Positions 17,930-64,000 of a DNA stretch of 64,000 bases are shown in pieces. The position numbers and the translations under genes were made by a program. The notes beneath the pieces were generated by a model. The model made no database searches. It was not told the origin of the DNA and worked only from the letters and a program-made list of their open reading frames with translations. Positions within the stretch are counted from its first letter, which is position 1, and each line of letters begins with the position of its first letter. This DNA is from Dicyema japonicum. Taxonomy: Eukaryota; Animalia; Dicyemida. The stretch covers positions 81,984 to 145,983 of the forward strand of contig RDEW01000065.1 in the NCBI GenBank assembly GCA_011109175.1, in the 5' to 3' direction.

Positions 17930-19079
17930 TTAGAAAATAAAAAATAGTTCCTCAAATATTTCCTGTTCATAGTCGATCTCTTCAGAGACTTTGGTGGACT
18001 CACCTCCCTCAATCGTCAAAAATAGGTCGTTGGAGTAGTAGGTTTCACTTAAATTACTTAATAACAACGACTCAGTGGGACAACTCTGAATTTCTATCTT
18101 ATCCTCAGATCTGACACTGTTCGCGGTATTTCGATCTACATTAATGATAACTCAACCTGTAGCATCGACGGAAGAGTTCTGAAGAGGTTGAATTGAGAAA
18201 GTCGAAGAATTTCCATGATTTTTGTCCCATATTTCCACATTTTCCTCGACTTTCTAAGATGTGGTAAATTTTCAACTTTCTTCATCTCCGAATATTGGAG
18301 AAGTAATTTGAAGTAAGTTTCTTTCAACTTCGACGCTTCATCGTCGTTTTTGAGCCTTGATATGAAATCATCCACTGTGGTATTGTCACGTGGTTGGAGA
18401 CTTTGAGGTGAAACTGATTCACTTAAAAAAAATCTACTCTGAATTCAAAACTTACGATTTGACAGAACTCGTGGCTTGAGGTTCCCCCAAAATGTTGATA
18501 AATTCTTCATCCTCAGAATCGACGACGTCATCGGTCAGTTTCGGGGGACTGTTCGTTTCAAAACTCTCCCATTAAACAACAAAATACTAAAATTTCTTCA
18601 TTTTCGAGGAAAGTAGTTTGTAACAATTTGTCAGACTTTATTTGAGCTTTCTTGGTTTTGTTGAGCTTTTTTAATAAACCAAGGATCACTTTGCTGACGA
18701 TTTTCTCGAATTTTGTCGCTTTTTTGTTCAATTTTTTCAGCGTTTTCGAATAATCGTTCAGAAGTAATTTGCATTTGTTAATTTTTTGGGTTAATTTGAG
18801 GTTTTCTTTCGACAATATTTCATTTCTGTCTACTTCCTTTAGCAGCTTTTCATTTTCATTCCCCAATCTACGATTTACACAAGCAAGTGAGCCGCAAACA
18901 TCTGTTTTCTAGGATCTTATTGAGTTTAAGCTTAAGTTGATTAATGGGGACAGACATAACCAACACATTGTGGGGGATTGTAAGCTGTGGGCAAATCACC
19001 TGGTCATTTCCTGAATTAAATTTAATATTTTTTGCTTTTCATTTTCTTCTAAGTTTGTTAAAATATGTTTTTCCTTCAT
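17930..19079 (-). CDS. Coiled-coil protein, KIAA1328/hinderin-like, about 309 aa, 6 exons
   Basis: GT-AG introns at 18868-18999 (132 nt), 18566-18587 (22), 18434-18455 (22), 18254-18276 (23) and 18136-18156 (21) give an uninterrupted 930-nt CDS. N-terminus LEENEKQKILNLIQEMTR..INKCKLLLNDYSKTL and C-terminus EQEIFEELFFIF* resemble remembered hinderin motifs. Confidence 0.7.
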
Positions 19080-19379
19080 TACTGCCAAATTGTGTTGCTA
19101 AGAGACAATATTTATTAATAGTCTTAGGATAATTAACGATAATACAAAATAACCACTATTCACGTGTTATTGTCTTTTTCAAATTGCAGAAGCATTCCAA
19201 TGTAGTTCCTGAAGAAGAACACTTCACTAGAGTTTATACTAAAACACTTCCAAAAGATGGTGGGATCGTTGGGGAAGTTATTGGAGACTGGGGTCACTTA
19301 ATTGGTAGGCTAACAGCTTCTTTGTAATCTTAAAGCTTCTTAAAATATCAAAGAAAAGAAGCACAATCTATAAAGTGGT

Positions 19380-19620
19380 TCTCAAAATTTTGGAAACTAT
19401 TCTTTAATCTTCGAATTCTGCCAAAACTTGAGGTATTCTAAAAGTTAATTCCATGTATTATTTTTGAGGTCAATTGATTCATATCTTAATTCGGAATTAG
19501 AATTTAGCGAATTTTGAAAATGAAAAAGAAGTTCAGTTTGAGTGATGATAAGTGTGATTTATAGACTTCCAATTTCATACTCTGCAACTCTTTCAAATTC
19601 ATTTTTTTGGAACTAATAAT
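19380..19620 (-). mobile_element. hAT C-terminal remnant, paralogous to 32930-33300
   Basis: Clear nucleotide similarity to 33000-33200; FW...FP dimerisation-like residues. Confidence 0.5.
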
Positions 19621-20030
19621 ATAGGTCAAAAACACATATGAACACAATCGCAGGATTCCTTGCTTTCAAGTACAAGATGGACCTCATCCAAATAAGACTT
19701 AGCGTTAGCAAGGACTCTCAAATCCCAGATTGATAGTATCAGGAAAAAGTCGCTTCATTCTATACTTTATATGGATGAAATCGTAATTACTTCTCAAAGA
19801 TCATTGAAGCACACGGAAGTAGAAAATTGCATAAGATTTATTAATTGGAGAGCTCAAACTACATTATGGTGCTCCAGTCAAAGTTCTAACGTGGGAAGAT
19901 GTCGTTTCAAAGGATTATAAATGTCACTTGGGAGCCATCGTAACTGATGCATCAACTAGAAAATACATTCAATCCGTTGTTTTCAAAACGTTGGAAAGAA
20001 TGTTGGTGGAGTTTAAATATGGGGTTTGCA
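19620..20030 (+). mobile_element. R4/Dong-like RLE retrotransposon 3' remnant
   Basis: KTHMNTIAGFLAFKY, LHSILY and YIQSVVFKTLE are homologous to 61370-62135. Confidence 0.6.
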
Positions 20031-20099
20031 CTATCAAGGATAAGTATATCGAGTTTTATATGGGGTGGGCACTATGGCGAGTTTTCCACGCCCGATTAA

Positions 20100-20700
20100 T
20101 ATTAATATTAGTCTTCTTATTTATGTGGATGACGTAATCGTGGTGGACACATCTCTAAAATCTTCTATATCTGAATGAAGAATCCGGGAGTATGTTGACC
20201 AGATTGAGCAATGGTGCAACTTGAGAGGGTTAAAGCTCTCTGCTGAAAAATCATGCGCACTCCGAATAACCAATGTGAAAAAACACCTGAAACAAGAGTA
20301 CACACTGGGAGTAAACAATTCACACAGCCTGCCTTACCTGGGGATCTACTATGGACACACAGGAGATTACATGGAGGACATGAATGGAGGAGAAAGAGAG
20401 CTGTTCAGTAGCCCTTGTGTACACGAAAGTTACACGTTAGTCGTGACACCTACCTGTTCATCTTCAAGGGAGTTATCCTTCCTAGTCTACTTTATGGGTG
20501 CGAGGGGTGGTTCTTCTCTCCGAAGAGGGAGAAGATCTTATCCTTCCTAGAGAAGACTAGGAGAGCTATAATTAAGCTCCTTTTAAACAAGAAACTGAAA
20601 GACTGTCTAAGTGAGGACGAAAACAAGCTGTTAGAACTAATACCCTCCAGAAAACTCCTTAACTCTTTTGTTAATAGATCGTTATTGTTGTTGTTCAAGG
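20100..20700 (+). mobile_element. Decayed non-LTR RT C-terminal fragment
   Basis: YVDD-like motif, YLG, VILPSLLYGCEGW. The 3' segment at 20641-20685 is nearly identical to 38251-38295, where a (TTA)n tail follows. Confidence 0.55.
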
Positions 20701-22616
20701 AAGAGTAAGGAAGATTCGGTTACAGCAACCGATCACTAGTGGAGTTACCAAATCAGTTCGATGATGTTAAAAGCAACCCGAGTGAGGACGAAACGGATGG
20801 GTTTCAGGTCAACGACTCATCTTCTAAGGGGAGAAAAGTCTAGAATCGATTAGTAATTTTGATTTAATTGTGTTTCCGTAAAATCGATTTTTGAATTTTT
20901 ATTTAAATCTATTCGTTCGCAATCCACGCACCCGGCTTCCTCAACTAACATTTGTTTTTTTGTTAAAAAATTATTTTATTAAATCTATTTATATTTTCAT
21001 CAATACTTTCGTTGTTTCTATAAAATTTTTTTTAATTCCACCGCTCAAAAGTAAAAATTCCACCGCGATATCGTCCAGGTTGAGAACCTCTGATCTAAGG
21101 AATGGTTTATCCAGATATAGGTCTAAATGATGGGGGACTACTTTGAGTTACTGCAGGTCCTTGTTGTTTAACAATACATTATACAAGTTCTACTGATTAT
21201 GAGTTATAACAGTGTTACTAATGTTTCCCACGTGGTTAATTGGACGGAAGATTGAGATGGTGATGTACCCCTATTGCAGAAAAAGTCTACAAAACTTAAT
21301 AACCTCTCTTGGAGTTAACTGCTAACTGATCCTTATTGTATGACTCCTAAAATATCTCACCCTTTCAGTGGCATGCCCATAGCTCTTATTCACGTGTGAT
21401 GGAACCATTGCTGAAATTTTTTTAAGGATATAACGGATTTAAAATTTTTACAATACGAATACTATCAATGCCCACTAACTGCAACATTATGGTTCACGGC
21501 GACTATGTGTGATATGAGGTTGTCAGGTCTAAAGTTTTGTGCTAAAAGTATTGAAGACCACATCTTAGAAACCAGCGGACTCGTGAAGTTCCTTTATGAA
21601 AAGTTATAAGGAGACTTTTGCAAACAGCTGAGTAAGGAAAAAGTAAAATTACTTCTCACAAACGAATTGAGGATAATGCTGTGCGAAGTACGTGTTATTC
21701 CTTGTGATGACATGGGATTGCATCATCACTAAATACAAAAGGGGTACTTGAGACAGTTGTAAGTAGATAAAAATATCAATGCATACAACCAAATGTGCTC
21801 AAGAGAACCCTTGAGAGCGTGTCCCTTGCTACATGCCGTGCGAATCTTCTCAGCATACAGTCTATTCAATAATAGTAAAAAAATATATTTTCTAGGTGAA
21901 ACGAATACACGTGAGAGGGATCAGTTAATAGTACGGATAATTTTTTTGTGAATAAAAATCAAGAAATGAATTCTGGTTCATAGAAAAATGCAATCTAATC
22001 ATATTATTTTTCATATCTTGAAAACACGATGCAACAGTACATTGATCGACAAATTTTTTAGGCATGCGTTTGATAGGGTCATCCATGAGGAGATCTCGGC
22101 TAGGAAAAGGGGTACAAAGCGACGAAATTGTAGATCAATAGATCGAAATATCTGTCACCAACTCCTTTGGAAGTTTAAATAATATTAGTTATAACCCCCT
22201 TTCGATACTCTTATCTCAAGAAAGTCGACATGAAACAAATTACAGATTCGTCGATTCTGGACCGATGGGTTTCGCGGGTCAATCAGAATCAAATAATTGG
22301 ACAAAATATTCCACTTGATGTGCAAACAGGTGGAGGACTACAATGTAAGGTGCGAAAACATTTGGAGCAGAAATCACTTGATTTGACAAATTCCTTAGCA
22401 ATCATAAAAAATAATAATTCTCCCCAAAGTAGGCTTATCCATGTTCTTTCTAACATGGCTCTCTAATCTCTATCGGGGATCTCGAAACACTTAAATGTGA
22501 GCCAGAGAAAATAAAATTAATAACGAAAAGTGAAAAAGTAAGAGTCGTCTAATTTATGTTTAAAATGAGATGTCTATTTCCGGATGTAAACTGAGTTAAA
22601 TGCGAAAGTTTATTAA

Positions 22617-22943
22617 TCAAACCGAGTTGTTAGATAATTTGTATTTAATAGCAATTTCATTAGCTGCTTTTAAGATTTCCAGTTTTGTAAATGGTTCTTT
22701 TAAAAATCCTAAAGCTTTACATTCATTGGCGAGTAAATCAAATGCAGTCCTTATCTTTTTGACCCTTTCCCTGATTTAAGAGAATATATGAGACCTTTCC
22801 CGTTGGTTGTTCATTTGTCTCTTTATAATATCAGCTCTGTACTGTTCTTCGAGACTATTTTTGAAATACCAAGCCTACTTTTGTTGCTGTCCCTGATCCC
22901 AGTGGTAGAAAGCATGGCTGTACTGACTACCATACAATTGTGA
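22617..22943 (-). CDS. Class I bHLH E-protein (daughterless/TCF3-4-12-like), last three exons; upstream exons probably extend to about 23640
   Basis: Removing 24-nt introns 22855-22878 and 22771-22794 gives ..LEEQYRADIIKRQMNNQRERERVKKIRTAFDLLANECKALGFLKEPFTKLEILKAANEIAIKYKLSNNSV*. This matches the E-protein pattern RRxxNNxRERxRVxxIxxAFxxL..C..PxTKLxILxxA. Confidence 0.85.
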
Positions 22944-24018
22944 CTAATTTATAAAACACAACACCTCCCTCATTTGTTGACTGTGGGTTATTCAAGTACT
23001 CCTGGTAGTCATCGTTGTTGTTGTACTAAACATGTGATATTGAATTAACCATTTAGCTGAGAACTAGTATTCTGTGGTTGTTTAAATTTATATATTTGAG
23101 TGTATTAAGTAGAAATCAATCAGGTCTATATTACGAAATTGTCACATAAGTGTTAATTTTACATTTCTGGTTTTCCTTAATTATGAACAAATAACACCAC
23201 TAATTAACACCAAGCACTGGTTAATTGGTTGGACGGTCGAGGTGGTACCTCTACTTTACATAATATCTATTTAGCTGTTATCTTCCTTCTCTCAGGCATT
23301 GATGAGGTGGTGACTCAGGGAACATTGGAGGTCTAAATTATAAGAAAATGGCATAGGATCCGGTTTTTAATCTCTTTCATTTGATCTTTTGTCAGAAGTT
23401 GATGATAGTTAATATGACTTCTAATAGTTATAAGTAACTTAAATCTACGGGCATAAATCGCCAATAAACAGTGGACACTCACGTTGACCATTTCAAAACA
23501 TGTCGAAGCCATTGTCACTTCTGAGGGTCTCAACCTTTTAAAAAAACGTTTGAGTTTCCTTGTTTTTCGCAGCAAATTGTGAACTTTACGGAGTTGGAAC
23601 TTAGCATTTGAGGTTCTGGAACTTCATTAAAATTCATTATCTACTGTCTCCCATGTCTATTATTTACACCATGGATACAAAAAGAAGAAGACTACGAGAT
23701 GCATCAGTAATGAAAGGATTAGGATATTGAGTGGATTAGATAAAATTCACTTTAGAGCAGGTTCCCAATATGTGGGAGTCGTGAAATTTTGAAAATCAAA
23801 AACTTTCACATTCAAAAACGTCAGGGAACTCCCGACCCTTCCACGGCGATAAGAACAAACGGCACATCATTGGGGGGAGGGGTGGGGTAAGACAACATAC
23901 TTGCGAAAATTCAATGTTTCGGTCTCCACAGCAACTAGTAGGCATTGAGAGTAAGAGGTAGTTGGTCGAGCATTAATAAATATTCACTAACATGTAAACA
24001 GAAAATCATTAAAATAAG

Positions 24019-24389
24019 TTAGTACACGTGCACAATCCCATACATGAATGTCCACATCAATATATATGTCTGTAAAATAAGCACAAAATAGACCAGAATT
24101 CCCCCAAAAAAGCCGGATGTCAAAATTTCGGTTTTATGGGTGAAATACTTGCTAATATTTCCTACACCAATGGTTGCCGCGAGGTTGATCTATCAATATT
24201 AACATACAAAACCACAAAAAACAGAGAACCGAATAAGTAAAAGACTAAGCCTCGAATTCCTGTAAGACCGAGTCCCCCTGCCACCAAACCGGTTAGAATT
24301 GCAACCACAGTCCATAACTTTTCTATAATAGCTGAGTTTTGCTTAATTGAAGAATCGCTCTTGGCATCCTTGAGACTCACAAAATACAT
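24019..24389 (-). CDS. EMC6: ER membrane protein complex subunit 6, about 107 aa
   Basis: NSAIIEK..AILTGLVAGGLGLTGIRGLVFY, then introns 24190-24212 (23 nt; a 26-nt alternative is possible) and 24070-24093 (24 nt). The spliced end SKYF..GFFGGIL-TYILMWTFMYGIVHVY* is the EMC6 C-terminus. Confidence 0.93.
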
Positions 24390-25307
24390 GTTGGTTAAAT
24401 TAATTTTTTTAATTTTAAATAATATATAATTTAATTTTTGAATAAATGAATAATAAAAATTTTTAAAATCACACTTAATGGTGGAAGACAACATCGTCAC
24501 TGTCTAGAAAGACTCCACTCCATTTATACGAAATAGGCCTTCTAAACTAGTTTTTTGCTGTCTATTGTTCCGTCATCCTGGATAGACTTCACGAGCTGAT
24601 GTCTAAGAAATAGGTGTTTCAATGTACTGTTTGTTGCTAGGATTCGATGGTTTTAATCTTTCATGACCCTTAGAGAATTTTAGTAAAATTTTGGTAACGT
24701 TCGCCTTTATATACAATATGCATCTATCCAGTCATGTCCGTGGTGAAAAGTATGGTGATGTACTTTTCTGAACTAGTAGATAGTCTGTTGTCCATTGCCC
24801 CCACCGCATTGGTTTTGGAAATGATAAAAATTCAATTGATAAGGTGGAGTTGGCATCCCCTCAGATCAGAGCAATGGAAGACTACTATGTTTTTATAGAG
24901 GATTATTTTCGTGGATGGTCTAGGATAACTTTGCTTGTCGTCTTAAAAAAGGACTTGAAAATGAGTTCTCTTTGATCGTTCTACTTGATATGAAAATCTT
25001 CTGGCATCAGTCGGGGAAGATATTCCATATGTTTACATTCCAAGATTATTTTGATAATCATCATTCGATGGTGCTTGCTGAGAGAGTCGACGAGAGTCAC
25101 GCTTTTTCAATGCTGACCCTTCTTGGTATGTTAAAATGTACAATTTGTAGGGAATAAAAATTATGGGCTATCAGCGGTCTCATGTCCATTATTTATCTTG
25201 GAATATTTAAATATTTTCCTTTTTTGGTTGAAATAAAAAATATTTCGTTTGCCGAATTATGAAGAACAAATTTATTAAAGTCGTGAATACAGCCCCAATG
25301 ATGAATG

Positions 25308-25439
25308 TTCAGCAACAAAAACAGACATTAACAAATCAAGCTCCAGTTTCACAACGCCTGAGAATTGCCTTGTCCGTGACAATCTCCATTCTTTTAGAAA
25401 CTGGAACTTGATTTGTTAATGTCTGTTTTTGTTGCTGAA
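25308..25439. repeat. Inverted repeat: 43-bp arms (1 mismatch) around a 46-bp spacer
   Basis: TTCAGCAACAAAAACAGACATTAACAAATCAAGCTCCAGTTTC at 25308-25350 against its reverse complement at 25397-25439. Confidence 0.9.
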
Positions 25440-26365
25440 AAAAACATCATTTTACATATTGTTATCGTGGAAATGTATTAACAATTGGTCGGATGGTGAG
25501 CTGATTATGTAGTTCGGGTACACTATGACATAGTTCTAGTACGCTTAATGTGTTTCCTCATTGTAGAACTAACATCTCATTTCTTTTCCTCGGGAGACGT
25601 CGGATTCACCAATATCTGACTTCGAATTCTGTTTTATAACGAAATACGACCATGGCAGATAATGAACCTACAGTTATCTATTCAGTGTTCAAATTGCAAC
25701 CAAATTAACACACGGAAATAAGGCCTTACCTGTTACTCATGTAGAAATATCCTTCATCTTACCAGCCTTAGTCTCCAAGACCCCCGTACGCACGCTGGAA
25801 ATATGGCATTGCACCCATTTCCTCGCCCTCTGAAAAGAAAAGCACCAAGTTTTTAGACTTTCTCCATCTTTCGTTTATATAACTCCATCCGTTTGACCTC
25901 GACAATCTCTGCCTTCATGATAAACCCACTTGCCTAGGTGACCCGGCGCTACCTTGAGCAGATGCCGGAATACTTACCAGTCGTTCGAGAAATCTGATGT
26001 CAACAACAAAAATCAGCTCCCATGGTCACTGAACGAGAGACCCTCAAGTATCAAATACAAGTTTATTCAGAGCATCCTTTCAATCCTAATTAGTCATACC
26101 TTGGCAATACTTCTGTCTCCAAACGTTAGTTTCACTAAACTTCTTAATAGGAAAATATTGACCCAAGAAATAAAATTTTATCATATTTTTTGACATAAAA
26201 TAATTTTTACTTTATGTATTTTTCCCCTTCACCTGCGAATCTCTGGGAGCGTCCACTCTTGACTGTGACATTCTTGAATTTCGAGAGAGGAGGGATTTGC
26301 TGTCTGGAGCCATCTTCGCAAGCCAAGACAAATGTGTTTTGACAGCCACCAACAAGTTATAACAT

Positions 26366-26760
26366 ATGCTCGACAGACTCAACGTAGAATTCTTACTCAA
26401 TGTCTACGACCATAGAGAAATCCTCGACTTTTCTCTTTGGATCATAATTATTCATCCAACTTATCTTGAAAGGAGAAGAAATTCTATACAAAAACTCAGT
26501 CAAGGTTATAGAGTAACTTTTGACACATTGATGACTTTCAGCAAACATGTATTAATTGTAATCAGTGCGTCATCACGAAAATTGAACTTCAACTCACAGG
26601 GGTTATGACAAAAGCAACACCGTTCGAAATCCTCGTGAATAAGTGGAGTACCGTATTCATCCATCACGGAAAATCACCTAAAAACGGACATACAGAAAAT
26701 GCGTCGGTTCCCGAGAGAAACACCAGGTTCTAAGAAAAGATTCCGGGATCACCTAATGAC
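26366..26760 (+). mobile_element. L2-like 3' remnant
   Basis: LGVTFDxLMTF-like segment and a GGGATCACCTAA terminus. Confidence 0.55.
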
Positions 26761-27883
26761 CTTCCATCATAATTAGTTAATATCATGGTGAATATTACTG
26801 CGCTGGTTATGATTTGTGACAAAATTGTGTCAAATGCTAAGAATTATGATAATAGGCAATTTAAGAGAACAAGTAAACTCTTGATTGTCGAGAAAAGGCA
26901 CGTGATTAGCGTCCTCGATGAAGGTTTCGTTTCAAACCTACTTGGGAAACCGACATGTGTTAATTGTGAGGATATCCCATTGAATGCTGGAAGATTAGAA
27001 ATAGCTGATTCCAATGTGGAGTGAAGGAATAAGGATGGATAAGCTGGTAATAAATTTTTCTGAGTGGAGTGATTGCTAGCGATTATTGCCTCAGGGTCTA
27101 TGAATTAAAAGAGAATGTCCCATCTAACTAAGTGATCCCATGCGGCCATGGAGGAGCTCAAAACCGGTGGGGCAGACACCATGAAACACGGTTGCCAGTG
27201 ATTTAGATAGTTGACTAAAATTAAATTATGTTGTATCGATTAATTCACTGAAAATGTATTATTTGACTTAATGAAAATCAATTTATTACGAATAAAAGTG
27301 ACCAAATGCTCATATAGCGGCTTCCATGACTGCCCGATATCTTTCTCAGGATGGCGAGAAAGATTCGCTCAAATGACTAGCAGCGCTCACAGAGGGTCTC
27401 CTGATCGTGTAGAAATCCGATTTCCTAACTACTCAAGAAATCCAGCGTCACAGGCGCCAGTGGAACGAACAAAAAATCATTGGGTAGGACTGTGTATTTT
27501 GACTAAAAAAGGAATTTTTGACGTTTTGACATTTGCGGTTTAGGAAGATATGGAGATTAAATTACCCATTAAAGTGACGGAATATGCTTCGATTCTCTTT
27601 AAGAAATCATCATGACTTATTGCGGAAACCTCCTAGTCTCTAATAACAAGCAACATCCAAAAGTCTCCGACCTGATTCCTGCTGTCCCATTTAAGATGAA
27701 GTGAATTTCTTAACTGACACAATAAAGGCAGATCCCACCAAGAATCGTAGTTATTTCAGTCAGGACTAGGAAAAGTAGTGGCCTAGATTAGATAACTCAT
27801 ATTTAAACATGCCAGGGCACGTGATAGTAAGAATGCCTAAGATATTAAAAAATCAATAGGGATTAAAACCAAGTGTTATCTAG

Positions 27884-28280
27884 TTAGTCCGTCTTATCTT
27901 TGAGGTAACTGGAAAAATAACAGCTATAAATACTTGTAGTTAATAAACCTCCCCAGCTGAGCAAGTTGGACGACCTCGTTCGTGAAGTGACAGGAGAACA
28001 AAAACATATTCCTTGGTTGAACAGAGATCGCAAATCTCATGAATAGCATTGAGTAAAAACAGAGAGCTGTAGTCATCTTCCCTGAAATATATTCTGGCGA
28101 TCTTCTACAATCAGATATTGCAGCCAAAGGCAGTCCCCAGTTGGCAACTAAGAATAATAAGCTCTTCTACCTGGTCCCCAAAAGTGCTACAAATAATAAT
28201 TAAATGTCAACCGTGCTGGTGATCCAATCGCGAAATTCCTTTGTCTTTGCGTATTTCACGGCCGAAATCAAAAACGACAT
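27884..28280 (-). CDS. MPC1: Mitochondrial pyruvate carrier 1, about 107 aa, 4 exons
   Basis: Introns 28187-28211 (25 nt), 28148-28170 (23) and 27909-27933 (25), with a 16-nt micro-exon. Spliced protein: [107 protein letters not shown]. Confidence 0.95.
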
Positions 28281-29269
28281 AGAATCAAATAATTTTATCG
28301 CGAATTTATTTATTATATTTAAAATTTGGAATTATTTTAATTTAATTATAATATTTATTTTATAGACAAAAATATCAACAAATGGTACACATTTAGTGGA
28401 GACAGAATTTTAAACTGATATGAATATTTGATTTGTTATCATCATGAAATACCGATATAATTGTCGATTGCAAAAAAATTATAAAATTAATCGATCACAT
28501 AGATCACATCGTAAATCGATGATTTAAAGCTATTTTTATTAAGTACGGGGTAACACGCTTCGCTAACAGCTTGAGATATTTTGACGTCTGACATTTCAAT
28601 TGTCGGTTTCTTACTCTTTTTTTACAAAAATGACATTTCATTGTTAAAATTATTAATCATTTTAAAGATCAATTATCTAAAGAGAGTGGTCGGAGGTTGA
28701 GATTGCATTGAATGTCTACTTTGCATCATGGTGGATATGACCCCTTGTTTTTCCTTCTCTCGTGAATATGAACGAGATGACGGACTTAAGAAATATCTGA
28801 AACCCTAAAGTCCTGATTAAAGGAAGTGTCGGATCCAGGAGAGTCACCTTCATAATTTCATGTGTTTTAAAAAGCAACCCGTAAAGGAGTAGTAGTTTCC
28901 ATCATTAAACCTCAGCTTGGGCAGAACTCGCACTTTAAGAAGTAAGAACAGTCATGCTAACTAATCAGAAGCAATTATTTCAAGAAAATGTTCTTGATTT
29001 GTTCTTTTCTTCTTTTTGTGTGTGAGTCCTATAAGACAATCTGGTTTCGCAGTGGTGAACAAATGATCACGGCATCACTCGTCAATTTTGTCCGGAACTT
29101 ATTACACTGCGCATCCTTCTTGCATGTGTAGGGTAACAGTTACTACCATCGTCTGGGAAATTGACTACTTTTTTTTGACAGTTGGAGCTTGATTAGTTGA
29201 TAATGGTTTCTGTTTCCAAACAAATTTGATTTTACAAACAATAGCTGACTCATTGAGCGTAAAGAACAC

Positions 29270-29400
29270 TTAATTAAAGGAGTTCCCTCTGACAATAGCT
29301 ATCAAGATACGCTCTCGAAGCCATCCATTCTCAGGTGGATCCTTGGTGACTTTTTGGATCATCAAGCCGATTAGACGGACTAGATGTCCGTTTGTCGGCC
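29270..29400 (-). mobile_element. CRE-like 3' remnant
   Basis: Homologous to 12320-12400 (TKDP..WLRERI..IVRGN). Confidence 0.6.
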
Positions 29401-30999: not shown

Positions 31000-31706
31000 T
31001 TACGAAAGCGAGTCAATTTCGAGTAAATATAAGGGATCCTTGAATGAGTAAATGAAATACAATTTCAGGAAGACAAATAAGACAATTACGGAACCAATGA
31101 CTCCAAGAGCAATGTAAATATTCCTGATCGTGTGATCTAAAAATAAATAGACGTCAAACTTTCTTTTTCAGCATCTAAATATATAGAAATTTTATACAAT
31201 ATTCGCAGATAAATGTGATAGTCTCACCAGGATTACAATAGCAAGTAGTCCACTTCCAAGATATTTCCCTTTTGAGGCATAAACAACTTCCACGAGAGTA
31301 CGTTGAATCCCCCCAATTTTCGTAACTTAGTAACGGATGATAATCTCCTGTTCTACTCCAAAGCCATTTTGCTAGTTCCGGAATAGGTAAATCCATATAG
31401 TATCCTGCAGTATATACGAGGTCAAAGTCATTGTTCACCTTATCCAATAAGTTGCCAACAAAGTGGTTAATTTTTGCATTTGTAATCGCAATCTAAAAAT
31501 TATTTTCGCTTATACCAGGTTCCCCTTGGTAAATGCACAAAAATCTCTGGCATCAGCCCAAGATTTGTAATCTTTATAAAGTACGTAGCAGAGTTTGTCA
31601 AGCTGGTTGTGAAGGCCAGTGCCATTAAAGTCTCGATTGCATTTAGAGAGAACTTAATAGTATAATTTTTGATACCATTGATAATAAAAATAAAAACCAC
31701 TAACAT
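31000..31706 (-). CDS. Type I membrane C-type lectin-like domain receptor, copy 1 (204 aa, 5 exons)
   Basis: Four 23-nt GT-AG introns (31653-31675, 31493-31515, 31175-31197, 31137-31159) and a 15-nt micro-exon. Signal peptide; CYVLYKDYKSWADARDFC..GNLIAI; WLWS..NWG..CLCL..WKWTTCYC..FICE; TM helix; short tail. Confidence 0.92.
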
Positions 31707-34328: not shown

Positions 34329-35036
34329 CTACGTAAGCAAGTCATTTTCGAGTAAAAATAAGGGATCCTTGAATGAGTAAATGAAATACAAATTCAGGAG
34401 GATAAATAAGACAATTACGGAACCAATGACTCCAAAAATAATGTAAATATTCCTGATCGTGTGATCTAAAAATAAATAGACGTCATACTTTCTTTTTCGG
34501 CATCTAAAATATATAGAAATTTTATACAATATTCGCAGATAAATGTGATAGTCTCATCAGAATTACAATAGCAAGTAGTCCACTTCCAAGATATTTCCCT
34601 TTTGAGGCATAAACAACCTCCTCGAGAGTACGTTGAATCCCCCCAGTTTTTATAACTTACCCACGGATGATAGCCTTCTGTTCTACTCCAAAGCCATCCC
34701 CCTTGTCCTGGAACAAGTCTTTCCACATAGTATCCAGCAGTATAAACGAGGTCAAAGTCATTGTTCATTTTATCCAATAAGTCACCAATAAAGCTGTTAA
34801 TTTTAGCATTCGTAATCGCAATCTAAAAATTATTTACGCTTACACCAAGCTCCCTTTGTTATTTGCACAAAAATCTCTGGCTTCAGTCCAAGATTTGTAA
34901 TCTTTATAAAGTACATAGCAGCGTTTGTCAAGCTGGTTGTGAAGACCCGTTCCATTGAAGTCTCGATTGCATTTAGAAAGAACTTGATAGTATAATTTTT
35001 GATACCATTGATAATAAGAATTAAAAATAATAGCAT
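34329..35036 (-). CDS. Type I membrane C-type lectin-like domain receptor, copy 2 (204 aa, 5 exons)
   Basis: Introns 34983-35005 (23), 34823-34845 (23), 34504-34527 (24) and 34466-34488 (23). Same architecture as copy 1; upstream and downstream flanks are also duplicated. Confidence 0.92.
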
Positions 35037-39803: not shown

Positions 39804-40259
39804 TTAATGAATGGAAAATTTATGAGGCAGACTAGACAAAACTTCTATATCATGGAATCTGACTGTCCCATCCATTCCACTTGAAGTAAGAACGCCAGGA
39901 GGCCAAAACTGAATTTCAGTAATCCCAATATGACGTTTAAGCATGAAATTACGAAAATGCATTCCATTAAATGAAATCACTAAATTATAGTCTGCCATTC
40001 TATAAATCTACCATTAGTCACAAATAATCACTCGTATATTGACCAGACTGCAGCCAATTGCGAAGTAGTCTTCATTTTGGTGTATGGCAAAACAAGTGAT
40101 GTGTCCTTTATCTATCCTCACCAATGAAAGCTGTTCCCGTGATCTTGAGTCCAAAATATACAATCCATCAGAGTTGTGAGCTGCCAGCAAGTAATTGTGC
40201 TGTGCGGTGTTCTTCACCTGGTTGAATACTCCATAATTATTCTTCAAAACTAAGAACAT
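39804..40259 (-). CDS. WD40-repeat protein fragment (TBL3/UTP13- or PWP2-like N-terminus), possibly a truncated copy
   Basis: GHITCFAIHQNEDYFAIGCSLVNIR, a 24-nt intron, then IYRMADYNLVISF..ITEIQF..TSSGMDGTVRFHDI. Flanked by RT debris and much shorter than a full ortholog. Confidence 0.55.
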
Positions 40260-41038
40260 AACTTATAAGTCAACGTGTTTGTACGGCTTCTGAGGTATCA
40301 ACAGGTCCCACGTGAACAGAACAGTACAATCATTCGAATTGCCGACAAAAATCATAGTGCTGGAATTCAAAAAATAGTCGAAGACATCCTAGACTTTGAA
40401 ATTGAATTTTTCATCCATTCATAATGTCTGTCCATAGTAGTTTGCAAATTCTTCGTAGCTGTCGTAACACATCCTTGCAAGCATATATTATGTCATTGGC
40501 ACAAGCAAGAGTTATCGAATTTTCGTCCGAATCAATTGGAATATCTTGCAATAATAAGTTAAAAGGGATGGTGATAAGGGGGAACCCTGAGGCACGCCGT
40601 TTGGAAAATTTTTTGAGACCAATTGCCAGGATTTATTCGAATTTTCCTCTTCTATTCCAGAGCCAATTTTATCGAAATGAAATTCAATACTTCATTTGCT
40701 TTTTTATATCTCTAATATTTGCATTCTGTAAATTCTTCGATTTCAATCGTGAATATCCGTATTAGATTATATTTCTTATGTTCACATTTACTAAAGGTGT
40801 GCTAGTACCCAATTTTTTTAGAATTTGAAAACAATTTTTGATTGTTTTAGGGGAAATAATTTGTCTATTAAAGTGGACTTTGAATATTTTAATTATTCCC
40901 AAAAAGAAAATGAATCATCTATTTAAGAAATTTGGAGAAACATGCAACGTGCTTTTGATTCGGTGGCGTTAAAACTCTCGAGTTGGCAAAAATGTCGAAA
41001 GGAAAAAAGGAGAAGGGTCACTTGCGTTACCTGATGGT

Positions 41039-44196: not shown

Positions 44197-44590
44197 ATGG
44201 ATGATTCTTTGGACACAGTCAACTACGGCGAGTATTTTACAAAATTCGCTACAGAATCCACTAACTCTATTAAGGAGCAGTTCAATCTCGTCAGAACGAC
44301 CCAAGAACATCTCGATTCGACGATAGACAGCCTTATCTCCCAAATTTGTGTAGCAGAATCCAAGATTTCATCACTGATCAATGTTGAATCGTACGCCAAG
44401 CGACTTTCGGCTTGTAAACGAAGAATTTTGTCAGTGAATACTACTGTTAGGAATATTAATGTATTTCTGTCCCTTATTTCAGAGTAGATTACGCCGAATG
44501 GAGTCGACTGTGATAGAACTTGTCAATGCTAAGAGGCTTGAGGTGAATGAGATTGATGCTAAACTCACCTCGTTGGAAAATTTAAAATAA
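44197..44590 (+). CDS. SNAPIN: SNAPIN / BLOC-1 subunit 7, 123 aa
   Basis: Exons 44197-44460 and 44483-44590 (22-nt intron). VESYAKRLSACKRRILSVNTTVRNIN-SRLRRME matches the SNAPIN pattern YVKKLxxARRRVxxVNxxLQxxQxRLRRL. Confidence 0.75.
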
Positions 44591-49954: not shown

Positions 49955-50790
49955 CTTAGACGTAAGTGGCTACTCCGGTTGAGTCATGTAAAATTTTTTG
50001 AAGTCGAGAACCATTCATTGGAGCTCGATCATGACAAAGCGATGATTCATAATAATGTCACTTGGGAAATATGACATTCTGGCCTGAATAGTGACTCCCG
50101 TGGCTTCACCACATCCGGTTAACAGAACGAGGATTTCAAATTGGGCGTTTTCATCCCAATTTATGATCAGTGTAAAGGGGACTTTCCTGAGTGATCAGGT
50201 GGGGGACAAGAACTGGGGTACAGAATTCAATATCTTGGGAGACGTTATCTTCCCCAACTTCCATGTTTATAGAATCGAACAAAACCGTCTCATTTTCGTC
50301 AGTCACAGTGGAATACAAATATTTGAGTACAACTTGGCAGTCAACTAGTCCGGTGGACTGCATATTGGCTGCCCTGAAAAGAGTCCCTCTGACATATTAC
50401 AGCATTTTTAGAGAACAAAATGGTTTGTGCCCGATTGTTATTTTTGGAGAATCTGTCATACATCATTCCAACCATCAGAACTTAAATAATGATTCCAATA
50501 CAGGACTGGAAGACCAAGACAACGTATGAACTGAAGCAGCTCTATTTAGTGTGACGATGCCCATTATCCGATGGTCCAGTCTCTTTTGAATAACTGATAC
50601 CAAAAGAACCCGAAAAAGAGCCAGGATATTATAAAGACGATGGAATATATGAGGCATACTTTCCACCAGGACAGATGTGTTGTAAATATCCTTTATTTTC
50701 CTGGTATACCCAGACATCCTCATTTTATATTTGGGTTCCTGTTCATCCATATTATATTTGTGTCCATCAGAAACCGTCAATCAACTTATA
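49955..50790 (-). pseudogene. Decayed second inward-rectifier K+ channel (Kir) paralog
   Basis: Frameshifted pieces: HLSWWKVCLIYSIVFIISWLFFGFFWY (M1), TIG-[frameshift]-GHR, VVLVFQSCIGIII*VLMVGMM..RAQTILFSKNAVIC (M2), TPVLVPHLITQESPLY, FEILVLLTGCGEATGVTIQARMSYF..IIMNHRF. Several stops; turret and pore helix deleted. Confidence 0.88.
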
Positions 50791-50846
50791 AGAATAGCGC
50801 TATGATAAACCGATAAAAATTAATTCTAAATACTCAATTAAATATG

Positions 50847-51961
50847 TCATTTTTGTGGAATCGTCTTGTCGAAGCACTTTACATCTGCCGTCCAGTCGGA
50901 CCCACTTAGTGAAAAAATGTTGGAAAAGCGGTGATTCCACAGCACCTCGTACGACTTGTAGGAAGTACGGGACTTTACAGAATGGCCGATTGACTCGCTG
51001 ATCCCAGTAGCGATGGCGATTATCTCACAACCCTCAAAAATGAATGAAGTTCTGGTATATCGGTAAAGTGGACTTGTTTCGTCGATTAAATGGGTCACTG
51101 TTATAGGCCATCCGGAATCACAACAGCTCGAATCAAAGTTTGTGGACAGTCGTTTGAAGTAAAACGGAATTATCTCCCCCTCTCGAGTCTTCCTTGAATA
51201 TACGAGAAACATCTTGACGCTTGTGGCGATTATCTGAGACTTTTGTAAGTTGAGGATTCGACAGATCAGATATCGACGTCCATTTCTTTTACAGACAACT
51301 GCATTTTTGGAGAAGGTCCACGTCTTTGCCCGCGAAAGAGGGGATGAAATCTTCATGAAGGCCAATCCCAGAGTTATCGACTCGATATAAATTCCAAAAA
51401 TCGTCTGCAACATCAGAATAAGTCCTGAAGTATAGCATTGGTTCCCAATAAACATATCTCCGTACCCCACAGTGCTCTGGGTCACTATTGAGAAGATCAT
51501 GGCTCCTAAAAACCCTTTCAAATTGTAAACACACGTGGTTTTTGAATCGCTGTGGATAACAACGAGATACCAGATAACGGCAAAAATATTCCAGACGATC
51601 ACATAAACGGTCAAAAGAAAGACGAATATGTAAATCCACTTCCACATGAGGAGGGTGGTCACAAAATCATGGAACAAATACTTGGTCTTAGACCCTGATA
51701 TTTGCAGTTTGAATTTCCCCCGTTTGTCCACCAATCTGATGTCTGTTCGGCCAAAATTTATATTTCCGTCAAAAGAAAACGCATTTCTGTTTTTTAGAAT
51801 CGCTTCTGTGACGGTCATATAAGTGGAGGTATCATTGTCTATGGAAGCCTACTAAAAATTCCCCAAATACTAACGTTACTCGGTTTCTCTGTGAGAGGAA
51901 TGTGAGTTAATGCTTCATAATTAATTTCAGACCTTGTTATTATAAATCTGCTTGGCTGCAT
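50847..51961 (-). CDS. Inward-rectifier potassium channel (Kir), about 362 aa
   Basis: M1, TVGYG filter, M2, and cytoplasmic PITVTHLIDETSPLY / RTSY..EVLWNHRF. An upstream 87-nt exon (51875-51961) joins through a 26-nt intron at 51849-51874. Confidence 0.95.
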
Positions 51962-53240: not shown

Positions 53241-53552
53241 TTGAAGAACAGAGAAAACATCACATATAGGACCCTCATCCAGAAGACCCCAGCGAATATG
53301 AATAAAGCAATCGAAATCATATACCGTCAGACAATCGCGCCGGCCGTGGAATATGCCTCTGCTGCGTGGAGATTGGCGTTATCAGAGCCACTATCCAAAA
53401 CTAAACTTACTGCAAAGAAAAACAATACGTATACTGGGACCACAATGTGTAACAAAAATACCTCCCCTGCTGACGGAATCTACAACTCGTAAATGTGGTT
53501 CCGAATTTCTCCGCATTTGCGAGGAAGATAGACACCCACTAATCCTCTCACT
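53241..53552 (+). mobile_element. L2-like C-terminal remnant, host of the nested RTE pair (resumes after 59426)
   Basis: IAPAVEYASAAW..RICEEDRHPLILSL continues as FHAKENRL after the TSD. Confidence 0.55.
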
Positions 53553-59414: not shown

Positions 59415-59459
59415 AATCCTCTCACTGTTCCACGCAAAAGAAAATCGGTTAACTAAGAA

Positions 59460-62140
59460 ATTTCCGTCCCCAATCAGCTTCTTCTGCAAGGATCAAAGAA
59501 GGCATTTCCGTTCGACGGTGGGGGAACAATGGAGACACACAAAAAGAATTGAAAAGATCAAACTTGGGAGAGGAATCTTGCAAGGAGACTCACTCTCTCC
59601 CCAGCTGTTTACTCTGGTAATGAACCCACTAAGCCGAATATTAAATATAAAATTTCCGAAGATATGTATCAAAGTGATCCGTCTATTGTGACATATGCGA
59701 CTAACCATTTTCTTTTTATTGACGACCTGAAAATAATTGCCGAATATGAAGATACTATTCTAAATGATGGAGGATATTGAGTGTTGTTGGCTTTAAAAGA
59801 AACTGTGAAAAGTCTGCGACTAATCTGAAATGTGTCAAAGATACAAGTTATCTGGATGGTTGTGAGGGATATCGCTATCTTGGAGTGTTAGAAGATAAAG
59901 GGAGTACGGTTATGAAAGACAAAGTTATGGAAAAATTGCTGAAAATGTGAAGAAAAGAATAGAGATGCTGGCGAATTCGAAATTAAACGTTGTAAATTTG
60001 TTTAAAGCGATAAATGAATACGCACTCTCGCTGTATAATTATTATATTGGGCTTATCGACATTGAACCACGTGAATTCGAAGCTATTGATTTAGAAATCA
60101 GGCGTATACTCTCTAACTTACGAGTGCATTTAAAACTTGCTAACAAAGAAAGATTATATCCCAGCAGGAATAGTTTTGGAAGAGGATTAACCTCAATTCC
60201 TGATAAGAGTGAATGCATGTTATTTCAATTTCTGACCGACTTTGAGAGGAAATCAGGAATCTTGCGGGTCTTAAAACAAAGAAAAACACATTATTATTAG
60301 CACTTTCACGAGAGCCATAATATTTATAGCATGTGCAGCAAAAAATATAAGAGAATTAGTTAGGTTGCTTCAAGTTCTTCTGTTTTTTGCTAGGTCCCTC
60401 AGTGAGCCCAGATCGTCATTAGATGCCAATGTTTTCTTCACGGCTTTCAGATCGTTTTGTAGAACAACCGGGAGGGTAGTTCTCGGTCTTCCACAAAACA
60501 TTGGAGGAGTAGTAATCTCCCATTGCGATATTCGGAAGGGATATCGGGTCCAATCTCAGGACGTGTCCAAAAAGTCTCCAACGAGAGCTAATGATCTTGT
60601 GGCTTAATGGTATACAGTCACACTTATTGTACAGTCCATTCCGCGAGATCTTGGATGGCCAGGACATTCCAGTTATGATTCTTAGATGATTCCTGTGAAA
60701 TGAGTCTAGCCTCTCCAATTCCTCTTTAGAGGTGGCCCAGGTCCCAGAGTTGTATAGTAGAATTGGTTTGATGAAGGTGTCGTATAACATAATCCTTTGT
60801 TTTATGTTATATCCTTTCCGTTTTAGCAAAGATTTTTCAGCCTTTGTAATGCCGCATTTGCCAATGTTTTTCTCCGTATGATGTCTTCGCTATCTCCTAG
60901 TAGAGAGCCAAGTTTCTTTATGTGTCTCCATTTTTCTTCGAGTGTGTTGTTCATTCGTTTTATCTCTGTCCGTTCTGTTTTTCCCTGTTCACGGTGAGAA
61001 ACCATTTCCCAAGTATATCTGGTGCTTTTTCTAATACATGCTCCAGGAGTTCTTTGTCTTCAGAAATTAGGTCGACATCAGCATAAATCACTTTTTCTAT
61101 AATTCCTTGGTATAATGGTCTCAGTTCCCTCATAGCGGCCTCCAAGTATATTGTGAATAGTAGGGGAGAGAGGGAGTCTCCTCGAGGAGTGCCAGTGTTT
61201 GTTTCAAATTTTCTTGAGTAAGTTTTTCCAACTCTCACAAGAAGCTCTGTGCTAGACAGAAGGATTTGAATCATTCTTAGACTCGATTCGTCAATAAACC
61301 CTTCCAGCACTGTCATCAATTTTTTCCTGTTAACCGAGTCAAAGGCTTTTGATAGATCTATTCCCAAGAAAAACACATATGACCACTATTGCAAGATTTG
61401 TTGCACTCAAATACAATGTGGATGACCTATCTAACTTGAACACTGATGTTATAAAGGAATATCAAAAGAAGAATTATTTGGAAAAGACTAATCAGAAATT
61501 GCTTCATTCAATTAAGTGTTTTGAAAATACGAATGTCGAATGGATCAACAGAATGGCTTACTGGGGGAAACAATAGTCCAAGGTCGGATGCAATGTACTG
61601 CATGATACAGGATCGAAATCTGTTCTTTGAAGAGATGAAAGCAAATTGCAGTCATTGTGGAATGGCCAAAAAGTGTGGATCACCTGGCTAGACGATGTAC
61701 CAGGATGCTTAGCAGTGCGTATATGTGGCGACATAACGAAGTTGTAAGACGCATACAGTCCAATCGATTGTGTCAAAAAGTAAAGTTGAAATACGAGTCG
61801 ATACAACACTACAAACGGATATACAAGTTAAAAATAACAAACCTAATATTTTCGTTATCGATAAATCCAAAAACGAAATAATACTAATAGAAGTAGGGAT
61901 CACTTCCCAAGATTTGCTAAAACATGTTGAAGTGGAAAAACTACACAAATACGATTTTCTGGCAGGAGAACTAGCACAAATTCACAAGGCCAAGGTGACA
62001 ATAATTCCGATTGTTTTGACATGGGATGGAGTAGTAACAAAGTACTACAAGTCCTATATGGAAAGACTTAACGTGGATGTCTCTAGAAGGGCGTACATCC
62101 AATCAATGACGATTAAAAAAACTTTAGAGAGCTGATAATC
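59460..62140 (+). mobile_element. R4/Dong-like RLE non-LTR retrotransposon split by an RTE insertion
   Basis: GILQGDSLSP, FIDDL, YLG, RLYPSR..GRGL, HLARRC..YMWRHNEVV; RLE motifs NKPNIFVID..IEVGIT..EKLHKY..IIPIVLTWDG. Confidence 0.9.
60292..61365 (-). mobile_element. 5'-truncated RTE element D nested in the R4-like element
   Basis: 13-bp TSD AAGAAAAACACAT at 60279-91 and 61366-78; RT and conserved 3' end. Confidence 0.93.
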
Positions 62141-62154
62141 GAGCATAGATCCAT

Positions 62155-62620
62155 TAATGTGCGTTTAAACAATGCATTTATTTTGCCTATTTTGCTGTAC
62201 AACTCAGAAACGTGGGGTTTGAATCAAACTTGTACTGAAAGACTAAATGCTTTTCACAGAAAACAGCTGAAATCCCTACTAGACATACGCTATCCGAAGG
62301 TGATCAGCAACCAGAACCTATACACTATATGTAAATCTGAAAGCTTGGGGACCATTGTAATGAAATCTCGATGGGGATTATTTGGGCATATATTGAGGGT
62401 ATATCCTGCTGCTCCTGCAAAGGATATTATGGAACTGTACTTCCTAAGCACTGGTCCTTTTCGGGGCAGACCATGGACAACACTTCTTCTGACCTCAAAT
62501 AACGACCTAAAAATGCAAAATGCGACTGGAAAATCTTGATGACCTAGACGACCTCCGAGAAATTGCAATCTCAAATGATTAACTCTCTTGTTGTGAATGT
62601 GCATTATTATTTATTATTAA
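62155..62620 (+). mobile_element. RTE 3' remnant
   Basis: ILLYNSETW..RWGLFGHILR..GRPWTT followed by an ATT-rich tail. Confidence 0.8.
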
Positions 62621-62621
62621 A

Positions 62622-64000
62622 TGTGACCGGTTGAATACGAGCCCAGGTTGAATACGAGCCGTTAAAGACGTTATACGTTAAAGCCGTTAGAAATCAATAA
62701 TTTTTTTAATGAAAAATAAATCAATAAATTAATTAATTCCTATCTTTATAATGATTAGTAATTTTAATAATTTAAATTTCTCACAAATTTTCATTTTTTA
62801 ACGGCTAACATCAGATAGAATAGTAATAGATTTTTGCTCACGCTTGTTTTTGTTTTTTGTTATGAAGGTTGTCTACTTTACTTTGCTACAAAAGCAAGAA
62901 ATAATAACCTATCTGAGATATCAAATTTTACCATCCAATTTGCTGAAGGAGAAACGAAATTTCATAAGAACTGCGTCATTATTCAGACTAAAAGACTCAT
63001 TGCCGGCTCAACTATTTTTTTCAAAACAAGTTGAATTTTATTGCACGTGTTCGCTGTGGAAGAAGATGAACAGAAGAGGATATTTATTGAAAATGTTCAC
63101 CTCAAAAATGGACATCCTGGTCGTGATAGACTTCTTTCTCTTCTAAAGAATCTAGTCTATGGATCTTGCAGAGATGAAGTTATGGTTGTTCTCAGGTCTT
63201 GTTCACAATGTCTGGCAAGACGGCTCATGAACACTCGACCAACTATAACACCTATCAGAGCATATACAGTGAGAGAAAGGTACTAGTTAAATATTCTAAT
63301 TTCAGGTATATTTTTGATTTGGTTGATCTACGACACTATTCAAATTTCAATGAAAATTTTTGCTGGCTTTTGGTTGGGATGGATTTTTTTCCAAATTTTG
63401 CTGGACAAGACCTCTAAAGAGTAAATCGGCTACGGAGGTGTCAAGTGCAATAAAGAGCATAATTTTAATGTTTGGAAAACCAACTATTTTGCACACGGAC
63501 AATGGCAAGGAGTTTGTAAATGAAAAAATGTTCGAGTTATGCTCAACATTTGGTATAAAACACGTCAGGGGACGTCCTAGGTGTCCTTGGGTGCAGGGAC
63601 AAGTCGAGCGTCTGAATCAGACATTGAAATTTATGATTTCTTCAACTGCTTTTCAAAGAATTTGAATTTCAAATGGATAAACATAATTGAAGAAATTACA
63701 AGTTCCTATAATTCTTTACAGCATTCAACAACGTTGCACGCTCCTTTTAAATTGATGTTCGGAGCTTCTGCCAATGAAACCATAAATAATCATTACTCAG
63801 AAGAGGAAATGAATGAAATATTCAACCAAATTGATTTATGGAATGAAGAAACACAAACTGAAGCAACTGAATATCTTGGTTTTGGTCATCAAATGAAACT
63901 TTGAGAACAAAAGCAATTTTAAATTCAAACATTGCTGAAAGAAAAATGTTAACTAAAAGAAGGTGGAAGAATGATATTTCTATCTTTAACATCGGTGATC
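62622..64000 (+). mobile_element. Ginger2-like (KRBA2/SCAND3-type integrase) DNA transposon, runs off the window end
   Basis: Starts with TGT. H..HPGRD..CSQC zinc finger; DLVDL..DFFSKF, LHTDNGKEF and QGQVERLNQTLK. 26-nt GT-AG intron at 63280-63305; frameshifts present. Confidence 0.88.

Follow-up and report, generated by a model that had tools for sequence, protein, structure and literature searches.

The analysed stretch of 64,000 nt (the window) most probably belongs to a dicyemid genome, and most likely to that of Dicyema japonicum, in which ordinary inherited U2-type GT-AG introns would have shrunk to about 20-26 nt, and this reading is given a probability of about 0.88. Twenty-one such mini-introns were placed at exact coordinates across nine genes, namely those of MPC1, EMC6, SNAPIN, a bHLH-like protein, a coiled-coil protein, two C-type-lectin-like proteins, an inward-rectifier K+ channel (Kir) and a WD-repeat protein. 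All 21 segments are bounded by a 5' GT and a 3' AG, with lengths of 20 nt (one), 22 nt (three), 23 nt (nine), 24 nt (five), 25 nt (two) and 26 nt (one), i.e., with a median of 23 nt and a range of 20-26 nt. The second lectin-like gene is an approximately 93%-identical tandem copy of the first, introns included, and 17 introns are therefore counted as independent, their mean length being 23.3 nt. The first-pass annotation had described about 24 introns, all of 21-26 nt and AT-rich; the short GT-AG segments and the AT-richness (71% A+T) were borne out, while the length limits were too strict, as the first intron of EMC6 has 20 nt and one junction of the WD-repeat gene can be bridged only by a GT-AG segment of 33 nt. 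The narrow length range may be in part an artefact, since the finding of introns by hand favours short ones.

For the testing of the junctions, any GT..AG segment of 10-90 nt was admitted and the in-frame solutions were counted. A single solution was obtained at 12 of the 17 solvable junctions (eleven of 22-26 nt and one of 33 nt), and two plausible acceptors or donors were found at four, these being EMC6 intron 1, coiled-coil intron 2, the Kir intron (23 or 26 nt) and WD intron 1. No peak at 21-26 nt emerged from an ORF-rescue histogram over 12-79 nt or from a chaining dynamic programme with nine length classes; the decayed retroelements yield an excess of spurious frame-joining pairs that makes both tests non-discriminating.

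Genes carrying the mini-introns

The MPC1 gene (27884-28280, minus strand) has four exons and encodes 107 aa when spliced, with the Pfam MPC match (1.7e-26) on its large exon. Intron 1 (28187-28211; 25 nt, phase 0) lies directly before HFWGP, and intron 2 (28148-28170; 23 nt, phase 1) within the V of GPVANWG, each being the sole GT-AG solution at its junction; intron 3 (27909-27933) has 25 nt and phase 2, and the exon between the first two introns is a micro-exon of 16 nt (28171-28186). No gap interrupts the alignment of the spliced product with nine MPC1 proteins from animals, the conserved STHFWGPVANWGLP stretch included. All three mini-introns match coral or nemertean introns (632-1,430 nt) in position and phase: the nemertean MPC1 exon likewise starts at the H codon of HFWGP, intron 2 shares its codon and phase with a 1,430-nt intron of Pocillopora verrucosa MPC1, and intron 3 coincides in aligned codon and phase with introns of the coral (632 nt) and of the nemertean.

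The Kir gene (50847-51961, minus strand; Pfam IRK 2.3e-26, IRK_C 2.9e-36) is interrupted by an intron of 26 nt and phase 0 (51849-51874), which is the sole in-frame solution; the use of the AG at 23 nt would make a stop the first codon of the next exon. A 68%-identical Kir gene on a 509-kb contig labelled Octopus sinensis (L001) carries an intron at the identical site, likewise of 26 nt and phase 0 but of differing sequence; no further intron could be compared cleanly at another Kir locus (L002). Because position and phase are thus shared with introns of other animals (MPC1) and of a related genome (Kir), the segments are regarded as genuine miniaturised spliceosomal introns, as had been proposed.

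In the EMC6 gene (24019-24389, minus strand), with a Pfam EMC6 match of 1.3e-8 on exon 1, splicing in silico recovers the C-terminal TSGFFGGIL|TYILMWTF...VHVY. Intron 1 (24148-24167) has 20 nt, a 14-nt alternative being also in frame, and the contigs of all four genomic DNA runs contain it. Intron 2 (24070-24093) has 24 nt, is in frame and contains no stop codon; the 24-nt form may be preferable to a 15-nt alternative, as the spacing of human EMC6 suggests. The SNAPIN gene (44197-44590, plus strand) was located with the human sequence, serving only as a locator, and its identity was confirmed by the Pfam Snapin_Pallidin match (1.9e-9, above the cut-off); its intron (44461-44482) has 22 nt and phase 0, with a 16-nt alternative. 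Pieces confined to a single exon already clear the Pfam cut-offs in EMC6, MPC1, SNAPIN and Kir, and only for these four can the family labels, as predicted from sequence, be called firm.

The two C-type-lectin-like genes encode putative membrane proteins, the first of which (31000-31706, minus strand) would comprise a signal peptide, a lectin-like domain and a transmembrane segment. Its introns, all of 23 nt, are intron 1 (31653-31675) and intron 2 (31493-31515; its removal restores GNL|IAITNAK), both sole solutions, intron 3 (31175-31197), upstream of a 15-nt micro-exon (31160-31174), and intron 4 (31137-31159). The second gene (34329-35036, minus strand) is about 93% identical to the first over exons, introns and UTRs, with introns 1 (34983-35005, 23 nt) and 2 (34823-34845, 23 nt), both placed by the junction test, 3 (34504-34527, 24 nt) and 4 (34466-34488, 23 nt). 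The eight lectin introns, seven of which have exactly 23 nt as stated earlier and the remaining one 24 nt, are evidently four introns doubled by a recent tandem duplication. The sole indel within the duplicated gene is the extra T in intron 3 of the second copy, and its confinement to an intron points to non-coding behaviour of the mini-introns. The C-type-lectin label itself is tentative, being suggested by a PDB match of E = 0.47 and by the Lectin_C annotation of 96 of 100 protein-atlas neighbours; the pieces of the gene gave no Lectin_C match in Pfam, and the search for lectin homologues gave no candidate.

The 3' part of the bHLH-like gene (22617-22940, minus strand) contains two introns of 24 nt, each with an in-frame stop: one at 22855-22878, the sole solution, and another within the basic region at 22771-22794, with a 30-nt alternative. 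Their removal restores NQRERERVKKIRTAFDLL, and it is this restored motif that suggests the bHLH label; regular expressions for the canonical basic region gave nothing on the unspliced frames, the pieces had no HLH match in Pfam, and the N-terminus of the gene was not found. The coiled-coil gene (17933-18908, minus strand) has introns at 18566-18587 (22 nt, sole solution), 18434-18455 (22 nt, or 19 nt) and 18117-18139 (23 nt, with alternatives of 29, 35 and 41 nt). The name 'hinderin-like', earlier attached to this gene, was dropped, the atlas recognition score being below the threshold and the neighbours being LRR proteins. The WD-repeat gene fragment (39804-40259, minus strand) covers about three to four blades, with a LINE fragment upstream, and its matches fall below the Pfam cut-offs; its intron (40008-40031) has 24 nt and an in-frame stop, with a 36-nt alternative, and the gene may reach about 40357 via a 33-nt intron (40242-40274). 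The view that each removal restores a recognisable protein is accordingly secure for MPC1, EMC6, SNAPIN and Kir, while for the lectin-like and bHLH-like genes it relies on motifs and for the WD-repeat gene on sub-cut-off matches, and it is unsupported for the hinderin-like identity.

Splice signals and intron length

The 3,308 nt of confirmed exon contain 47 GT..AG pairs of 20-26 nt (exon decoys) vs 17 true introns. The two sets differ in the 5' end GTA (10 of 17 true introns, 59%, vs 19% of the decoys), in the pyrimidine at position -3 (14 of 17, 82%, vs 36%), in the T content of the last ten internal bases (50% vs 28%) and in A+T (71% vs 58%), and the 5', -3 and T-rich signals together separate them partially, with a leave-one-out AUC of 0.83. 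The branch motif YTNAY is not enriched (8 of 18 introns vs 7.0 expected in shuffles), and the Rfam search of the window found no snRNA or other family. The first-pass annotation had seen no evident branch-point or polypyrimidine consensus, which agrees with the unenriched YTNAY but overlooks the weak GTA, -3 pyrimidine and T-rich signals.

It had also suggested that splice sites are paired by distance rather than by long signals. In the extreme form, every GT..AG pair of 20-26 nt would be spliced with no other sequence information, and this is improbable. The very narrow lengths, the use of the first AG at least 20 nt from the donor in 15 of 17 introns and the unenriched YTNAY are all what such a rule would give; however, 45 of the 47 exon decoys are left even when only the first AG at least 20 nt from the GT is counted, and in comparison with codon-shuffled controls no significant depletion of the decoy pairs was found in the exons. 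Pairing by distance as the whole code is thus contradicted by 45-47 decoys of the same length per 3.3 kb of exon. The differences of true introns from decoys noted above stand against it as well, together with the first eligible AG of Kir (23 nt), which would yield a stop codon, and the presence, as found in myxozoans, of U2AF and of a conserved U2 branch-site region (PMC13644364). A weaker version, in which only the 3' splice site is picked mainly by a ruler, as the first AG at least 20 nt from the 5' site, without a sequence-defined branch point, is somewhat easier to entertain, but is still doubtful. If it were true, splicing would have to proceed in a fixed order around the micro-exons of 15-16 nt, which are enclosed between two mini-introns with a total span of 64 nt in MPC1 and 61 nt in the lectin genes, and a means other than sequence motifs would be needed for suppressing the exon decoys, as these are as common as chance predicts.

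The mechanism that we favour is that the mini-introns would be removed from pre-mRNA by a conventional spliceosome. Its cues would be a 5' signal reduced to GTa, the T-richness of the 3' half together with a pyrimidine at -3 and, in most introns, the AG that comes first at a distance of 20 nt or more from the 5' site. The intron length would be held near the steric minimum and might aid the pairing of the sites, although the length alone would carry insufficient information.

Probable dicyemid origin and comparison with other systems

Mini-introns of dicyemids are already known from the publications of 2007, 2010, 2019 and 2026. A genomic/cDNA comparison of 16 introns gave a length of 26.2 +/- 1.9 nt (Aruga et al. 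2007, PMC2222250), and the median dicyemid intron was found to be 27 nt (Zverkov et al. 2019, PMC6543705); such introns are reported also by Lu et al. 2019 (PMC6736024) and, as cited in PMC6543705, by Ogino et al. 2010. In D. japonicum, the splice motifs are reduced to GTa/AG, and the published view is that splicing is canonical and U2-dependent despite the reduction of its motifs (PMC13644364). The window shares with the dicyemids the very short uniform GT-AG introns at evolutionarily conserved positions, as well as a LINE-rich genome of about 37% G+C and the link to an octopus host. Its mean of 23.3 nt (n = 17) is lower than 26.2 +/- 1.9 nt and the median of 27 nt, and the difference may stem from the limited sample size, from the species or from the bias of a search by hand.

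The same phenomenon would be expected in the genome of a myxobolid myxozoan, such as Thelohanellus or Myxobolus, where median introns are of 22-27 nt (Hadjez et al. 2026, PMC13644364; 22 nt in both T. kitauei and M. rasmusseni), and where the reduced GTa...AG motifs, the lack of a clear polypyrimidine tract and the presumed canonical U2-dependent splicing also resemble the window. The 23-nt median of the window is nearer to these 22 nt than to the dicyemid figures, and the best protein matches of MPC1 are cnidarian, with 76-78% identity. However, corals and spiralians differ in MPC1 identity by only a few percent, and the coral matches (78%) are uninformative on lineage. Kir has only two close relatives, both carrying the label Octopus sinensis and 68-69% identical, followed by a match of 35%; they lie on contigs of 509 kb (L001) and 285 kb with G+C of 0.34-0.355, the former of which also has related LINEs besides the same Kir mini-intron. 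The published record gives O. sinensis as the host from which D. japonicum was collected. The DNA runs of the window date from 2019 and come from a single sample, and the D. japonicum genome was also deposited from one sample. In the window, the G+C is about 0.38 and LINEs abound, with many LINE/RT fragments, and the published D. japonicum genome has 36.7% G+C, with repeats making up 49% and LINEs being numerous, whereas myxozoans are cnidarians with few transposable elements and, in H. salminicola, 29% G+C. A myxozoan owner is therefore very improbable, and the earlier suggestion of a reduced animal parasite, either dicyemid or myxozoan, was sound and can be narrowed towards a dicyemid.

That the segments are not introns but errors of assembly, short insertions in pseudogenes undergoing decay or the products of DNA elimination like that of ciliate IESs is hardly credible: although circular contigs are numerous in dicyemid assemblies (Zverkov et al. 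2019, PMC6543705) and the intron status is read from genomic sequence alone, the bHLH-like, EMC6 and MPC1 segments are spanned by contigs of four genomic DNA runs at full flat depth and with no differences, no joined (intron-less) form of them was found in these runs, the GT-AG ends of all 21 segments have a chance of about 1 in 250 per segment (a rough hand estimate with uniform bases), the orthologue introns of MPC1 and Kir share position and phase, and the exons are otherwise intact and conserved. The IESs, besides, are TA-bounded and missing from somatic DNA, in contrast to the GT-AG-bounded segments of the window, those of the bHLH-like, EMC6 and MPC1 genes being fully present. Introns near the steric minimum and within a narrow range are likewise found in Paramecium and other ciliates (20-35 nt) and in the Bigelowiella nucleomorph (18-21 nt), but these are unrelated lineages, whereas the window has animal-type Kir, C-type-lectin-like and bHLH-like genes and standard-code ORFs.

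As a separate observation, at least two large contigs of the public Octopus sinensis assembly GCA_006345805.1 (VCDQ01001009.1 and VCDQ01011117.1), with annotated 'octopus' proteins, look like dicyemid contamination.

Implications for gene annotation

The biology seen in the window repeats what has been in print for dicyemids since 2007, with a generalisation in 2026. It puts numbers on the question of how the spliceosome selects introns of about 23 nt among equally frequent decoys. Most of the cellular genes here are missed by standard ORF finders and gene predictors, and the annotation of this genome must admit introns of 20 nt.

Mini-introns of the cellular genes

The window is eukaryotic sequence with a G+C content of ~0.38, in which LINE, reverse-transcriptase and integrase fragments form the bulk of the stop-free stretches and the cellular genes are present as short ORF pieces between them. 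Single exon pieces scored above Pfam's own cut-offs for MPC (1.7e-26), EMC6 (1.3e-8), Snapin_Pallidin (1.9e-9) and Kir (IRK, 2.3e-26; IRK_C, 2.9e-36). The homology searches with the window's own proteins did not find them in the protein collection, consistent with an assembly for which no protein annotation is public.

The genes were read in three frames, and for each junction all GT..AG segments of 10-90 nt leaving both flanking peptides in frame and stop-free were enumerated. A single solution was obtained at 12 of the 17 solvable junctions (11 of 22-26 nt and the 33-nt intron 1 of the WD-repeat gene, 40242-40274), and the remaining five gave a 20-24 nt solution together with shorter or longer alternatives. 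Thus tabulated, without the 33-nt segment, were 21 introns (one of 20 nt, three of 22, nine of 23, five of 24, two of 25 and one of 26), with a median of 23 nt and 71% A+T, so the observation of the first-pass annotation, about 24 introns of 21-26 nt, is borne out with minor corrections: 21 placed, of 20-26 nt. Its statement on the two C-type-lectin-like genes was exact, their introns measuring 23, 23, 23, 23 and 23, 23, 24, 23 nt.

These lectin genes (31000..31706 and 34329..35036, both on the minus strand) arose by a recent tandem duplication and share ~93% identity over exons, introns and UTRs; because of this their introns were counted once, which leaves 17 independent introns with a mean of 23.3 nt. 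Over the length of the gene the copies show a single indel, a T in intron 3, which befits non-coding sequence, and their differences are concentrated in one loop (MDLPIPELAK at 31370-31400, VERLVPGQGG at 34700-34730).

An integrase-like gene, with an H2C2 zinc finger and rve core, is joined over a 26-nt GT-AG segment (63281-63306, plus strand) that looks like a mini-intron within a transposon-type gene, and to which the end of the range given by the first-pass annotation probably refers; the frame changes within a T8 run ~80 nt past it, at about 63385. The WD-repeat gene (39804-40632, minus strand) holds only ~3-4 blades and adjoins a LINE reverse-transcriptase fragment upstream. It has either been truncated or has its 5' exons on the far side of a long, transposon-filled intron, and the latter would break the mini-intron rule.

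Intron positions and genomic DNA

The spliced MPC1 (27884..28280, minus strand) aligned without gaps across both junctions to nine animal MPC1 proteins, and the MPC1 loci of one coral (Pocillopora verrucosa), one beetle and one nemertean were retrieved and their exons mapped. Intron 1 (25 nt, phase 0, before HFWGP) falls where a nemertean exon begins, intron 2 (23 nt, phase 1, in the V of GPVANWG) at the site of a 1,430-nt coral intron, and intron 3 (25 nt, phase 2) at the site of a 632-nt coral intron and of a nemertean intron; the intron in TT[A]L common to the coral, beetle and nemertean genes is missing from the window MPC1. The restored proteins and the positions matching those of orthologues support the segments being introns, as had rightly been proposed.

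Four DNA runs, dating from 2019 and made from one sample, gave contigs of flat depth over 22450-28449 that run through the bHLH-like, EMC6 and MPC1 introns; neither a difference nor a joined form was seen there. Since contigs of all four runs contain them, these segments are genuine genomic DNA, and an assembly artefact as their source is ruled out. A run search confined to RNA libraries came back empty, and we infer that the mini-introns of the window are removed from mRNA; splicing of dicyemid genes in general has been documented by genomic/cDNA comparison (PMC2222250), and intron removal likewise by RNA-seq-guided annotation (PMC6736024). The parasite sequence stood at 20-390x word depth, surrounded by very short contigs in large number, as low-level carry-over from the host would produce.

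In the same runs, a short interspersed repeat at 27250-27650 reached ~15-40 times the word depth of its flanks in all four, with many loose ends at 27423-27490, and a smaller, twofold rise was seen at 26850-27049. Compared with the window, all four runs have an additional base at 24403 and at 26084; a G is inserted at 23956 in three of them, and in the fourth an A is inserted one base before. All three sites are outside the coding exons examined and probably reflect single-base indel errors in the assembly.

Splice signals and distance

The true introns were set against 47 decoy GT..AG pairs of 20-26 nt from 3,308 nt of confirmed exon. The introns exceeded the decoys in A+T (71% versus 58%), T in the last ten internal bases (50% versus 28%), GTA at the 5' end (59% versus 19%) and pyrimidine at -3 (82% versus 36%), and a leave-one-out weight matrix separated the two sets with an AUC of 0.83 and clear overlap; YTNAY was not commoner in the introns than in shuffled introns. 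The AG used was the first at >=20 nt from the donor in 15 of 17 introns. An exception is the Kir gene (50847..51961, minus strand), whose intron uses the AG at 26 nt and skips an earlier one at 23 nt because a stop codon would then come first in the next exon; its 3' end is a tandem acceptor, TAG TAG (51849-51854).

The suggestion that splice sites are paired by distance goes too far, since 47 decoys of the same length occur in 3,308 nt of exon and are not depleted relative to codon-shuffled controls. The code cannot consist of GT, AG and distance alone, which matches the published GTa ... AG logos, whose authors state that the recognition of such introns is still to be explained (PMC13644364).

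Kir relatives and known mini-introns

With the Kir exon as query, the search gave only two close relatives, of 68-69% identity (the next best, 35%), both labelled Octopus sinensis and annotated 'irk-1-like'. They lie in assembly GCA_006345805.1 on a 509-kb contig (VCDQ01001009.1, 35117-56118) and a 285-kb contig (VCDQ01011117.1, 26330-39004), with G+C of 0.34-0.355. The 509-kb contig, whose Kir gene is the 68%-identical one, has LINEs akin to the window's; in that gene, at the place of the window's Kir intron in the unconserved N-terminal region, lies a 26-nt phase-0 GT-AG intron of diverged sequence that has one AG only and was missed by annotation. For a true octopus gene one would expect relatives among molluscs as well as long introns; dicyemids inhabit the renal sacs of octopuses, and D. 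japonicum was obtained from one individual of O. sinensis. The two large contigs resemble contamination of the host assembly by dicyemid DNA. Immediately downstream of the window's intact Kir gene follows a second, degenerate Kir-like copy (50172-50562, minus strand), 30-38% identical, with in-frame stops and the GYG filter lost; it is a highly diverged copy or else a tandem pseudogene.

The attribution to a reduced animal parasite was right, and the mini-intron finding is a correct rediscovery of what has been known for dicyemids since 2007, when 16 Dicyema introns of 26.2 +/- 1.9 nt were described, with a comparison to Paramecium and the Bigelowiella nucleomorph (PMC2222250). Mini-introns in 40 D. 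japonicum genes followed in 2010 (as cited in PMC6543705), a genome-wide account in 2019 (PMC6736024, PMC6543705) and a joint treatment with myxobolids in 2026 (PMC13644364); the published D. japonicum genome has 36.7% G+C, 48.9% repeats and many LINE ORF2 copies (PMC6736024). With the dicyemids the window shares GT-AG introns that are very short, uniform in length and conserved in position, whereas the median of 23 nt is below the 26-27 nt published for them and nearer the 22 nt of some myxobolids, a gap that may be due to the small, hand-picked sample. On the evidence of the window itself, its source is very probably a dicyemid and probably D. japonicum, and a myxobolid is unlikely. Pairs of mini-introns also enclose micro-exons of 16 nt (28171-28186) and 15 nt (31160-31174 and 34489-34503), the intron-exon-intron units measuring 64 and 61 nt, respectively, and such micro-exons pose the question of splicing order.
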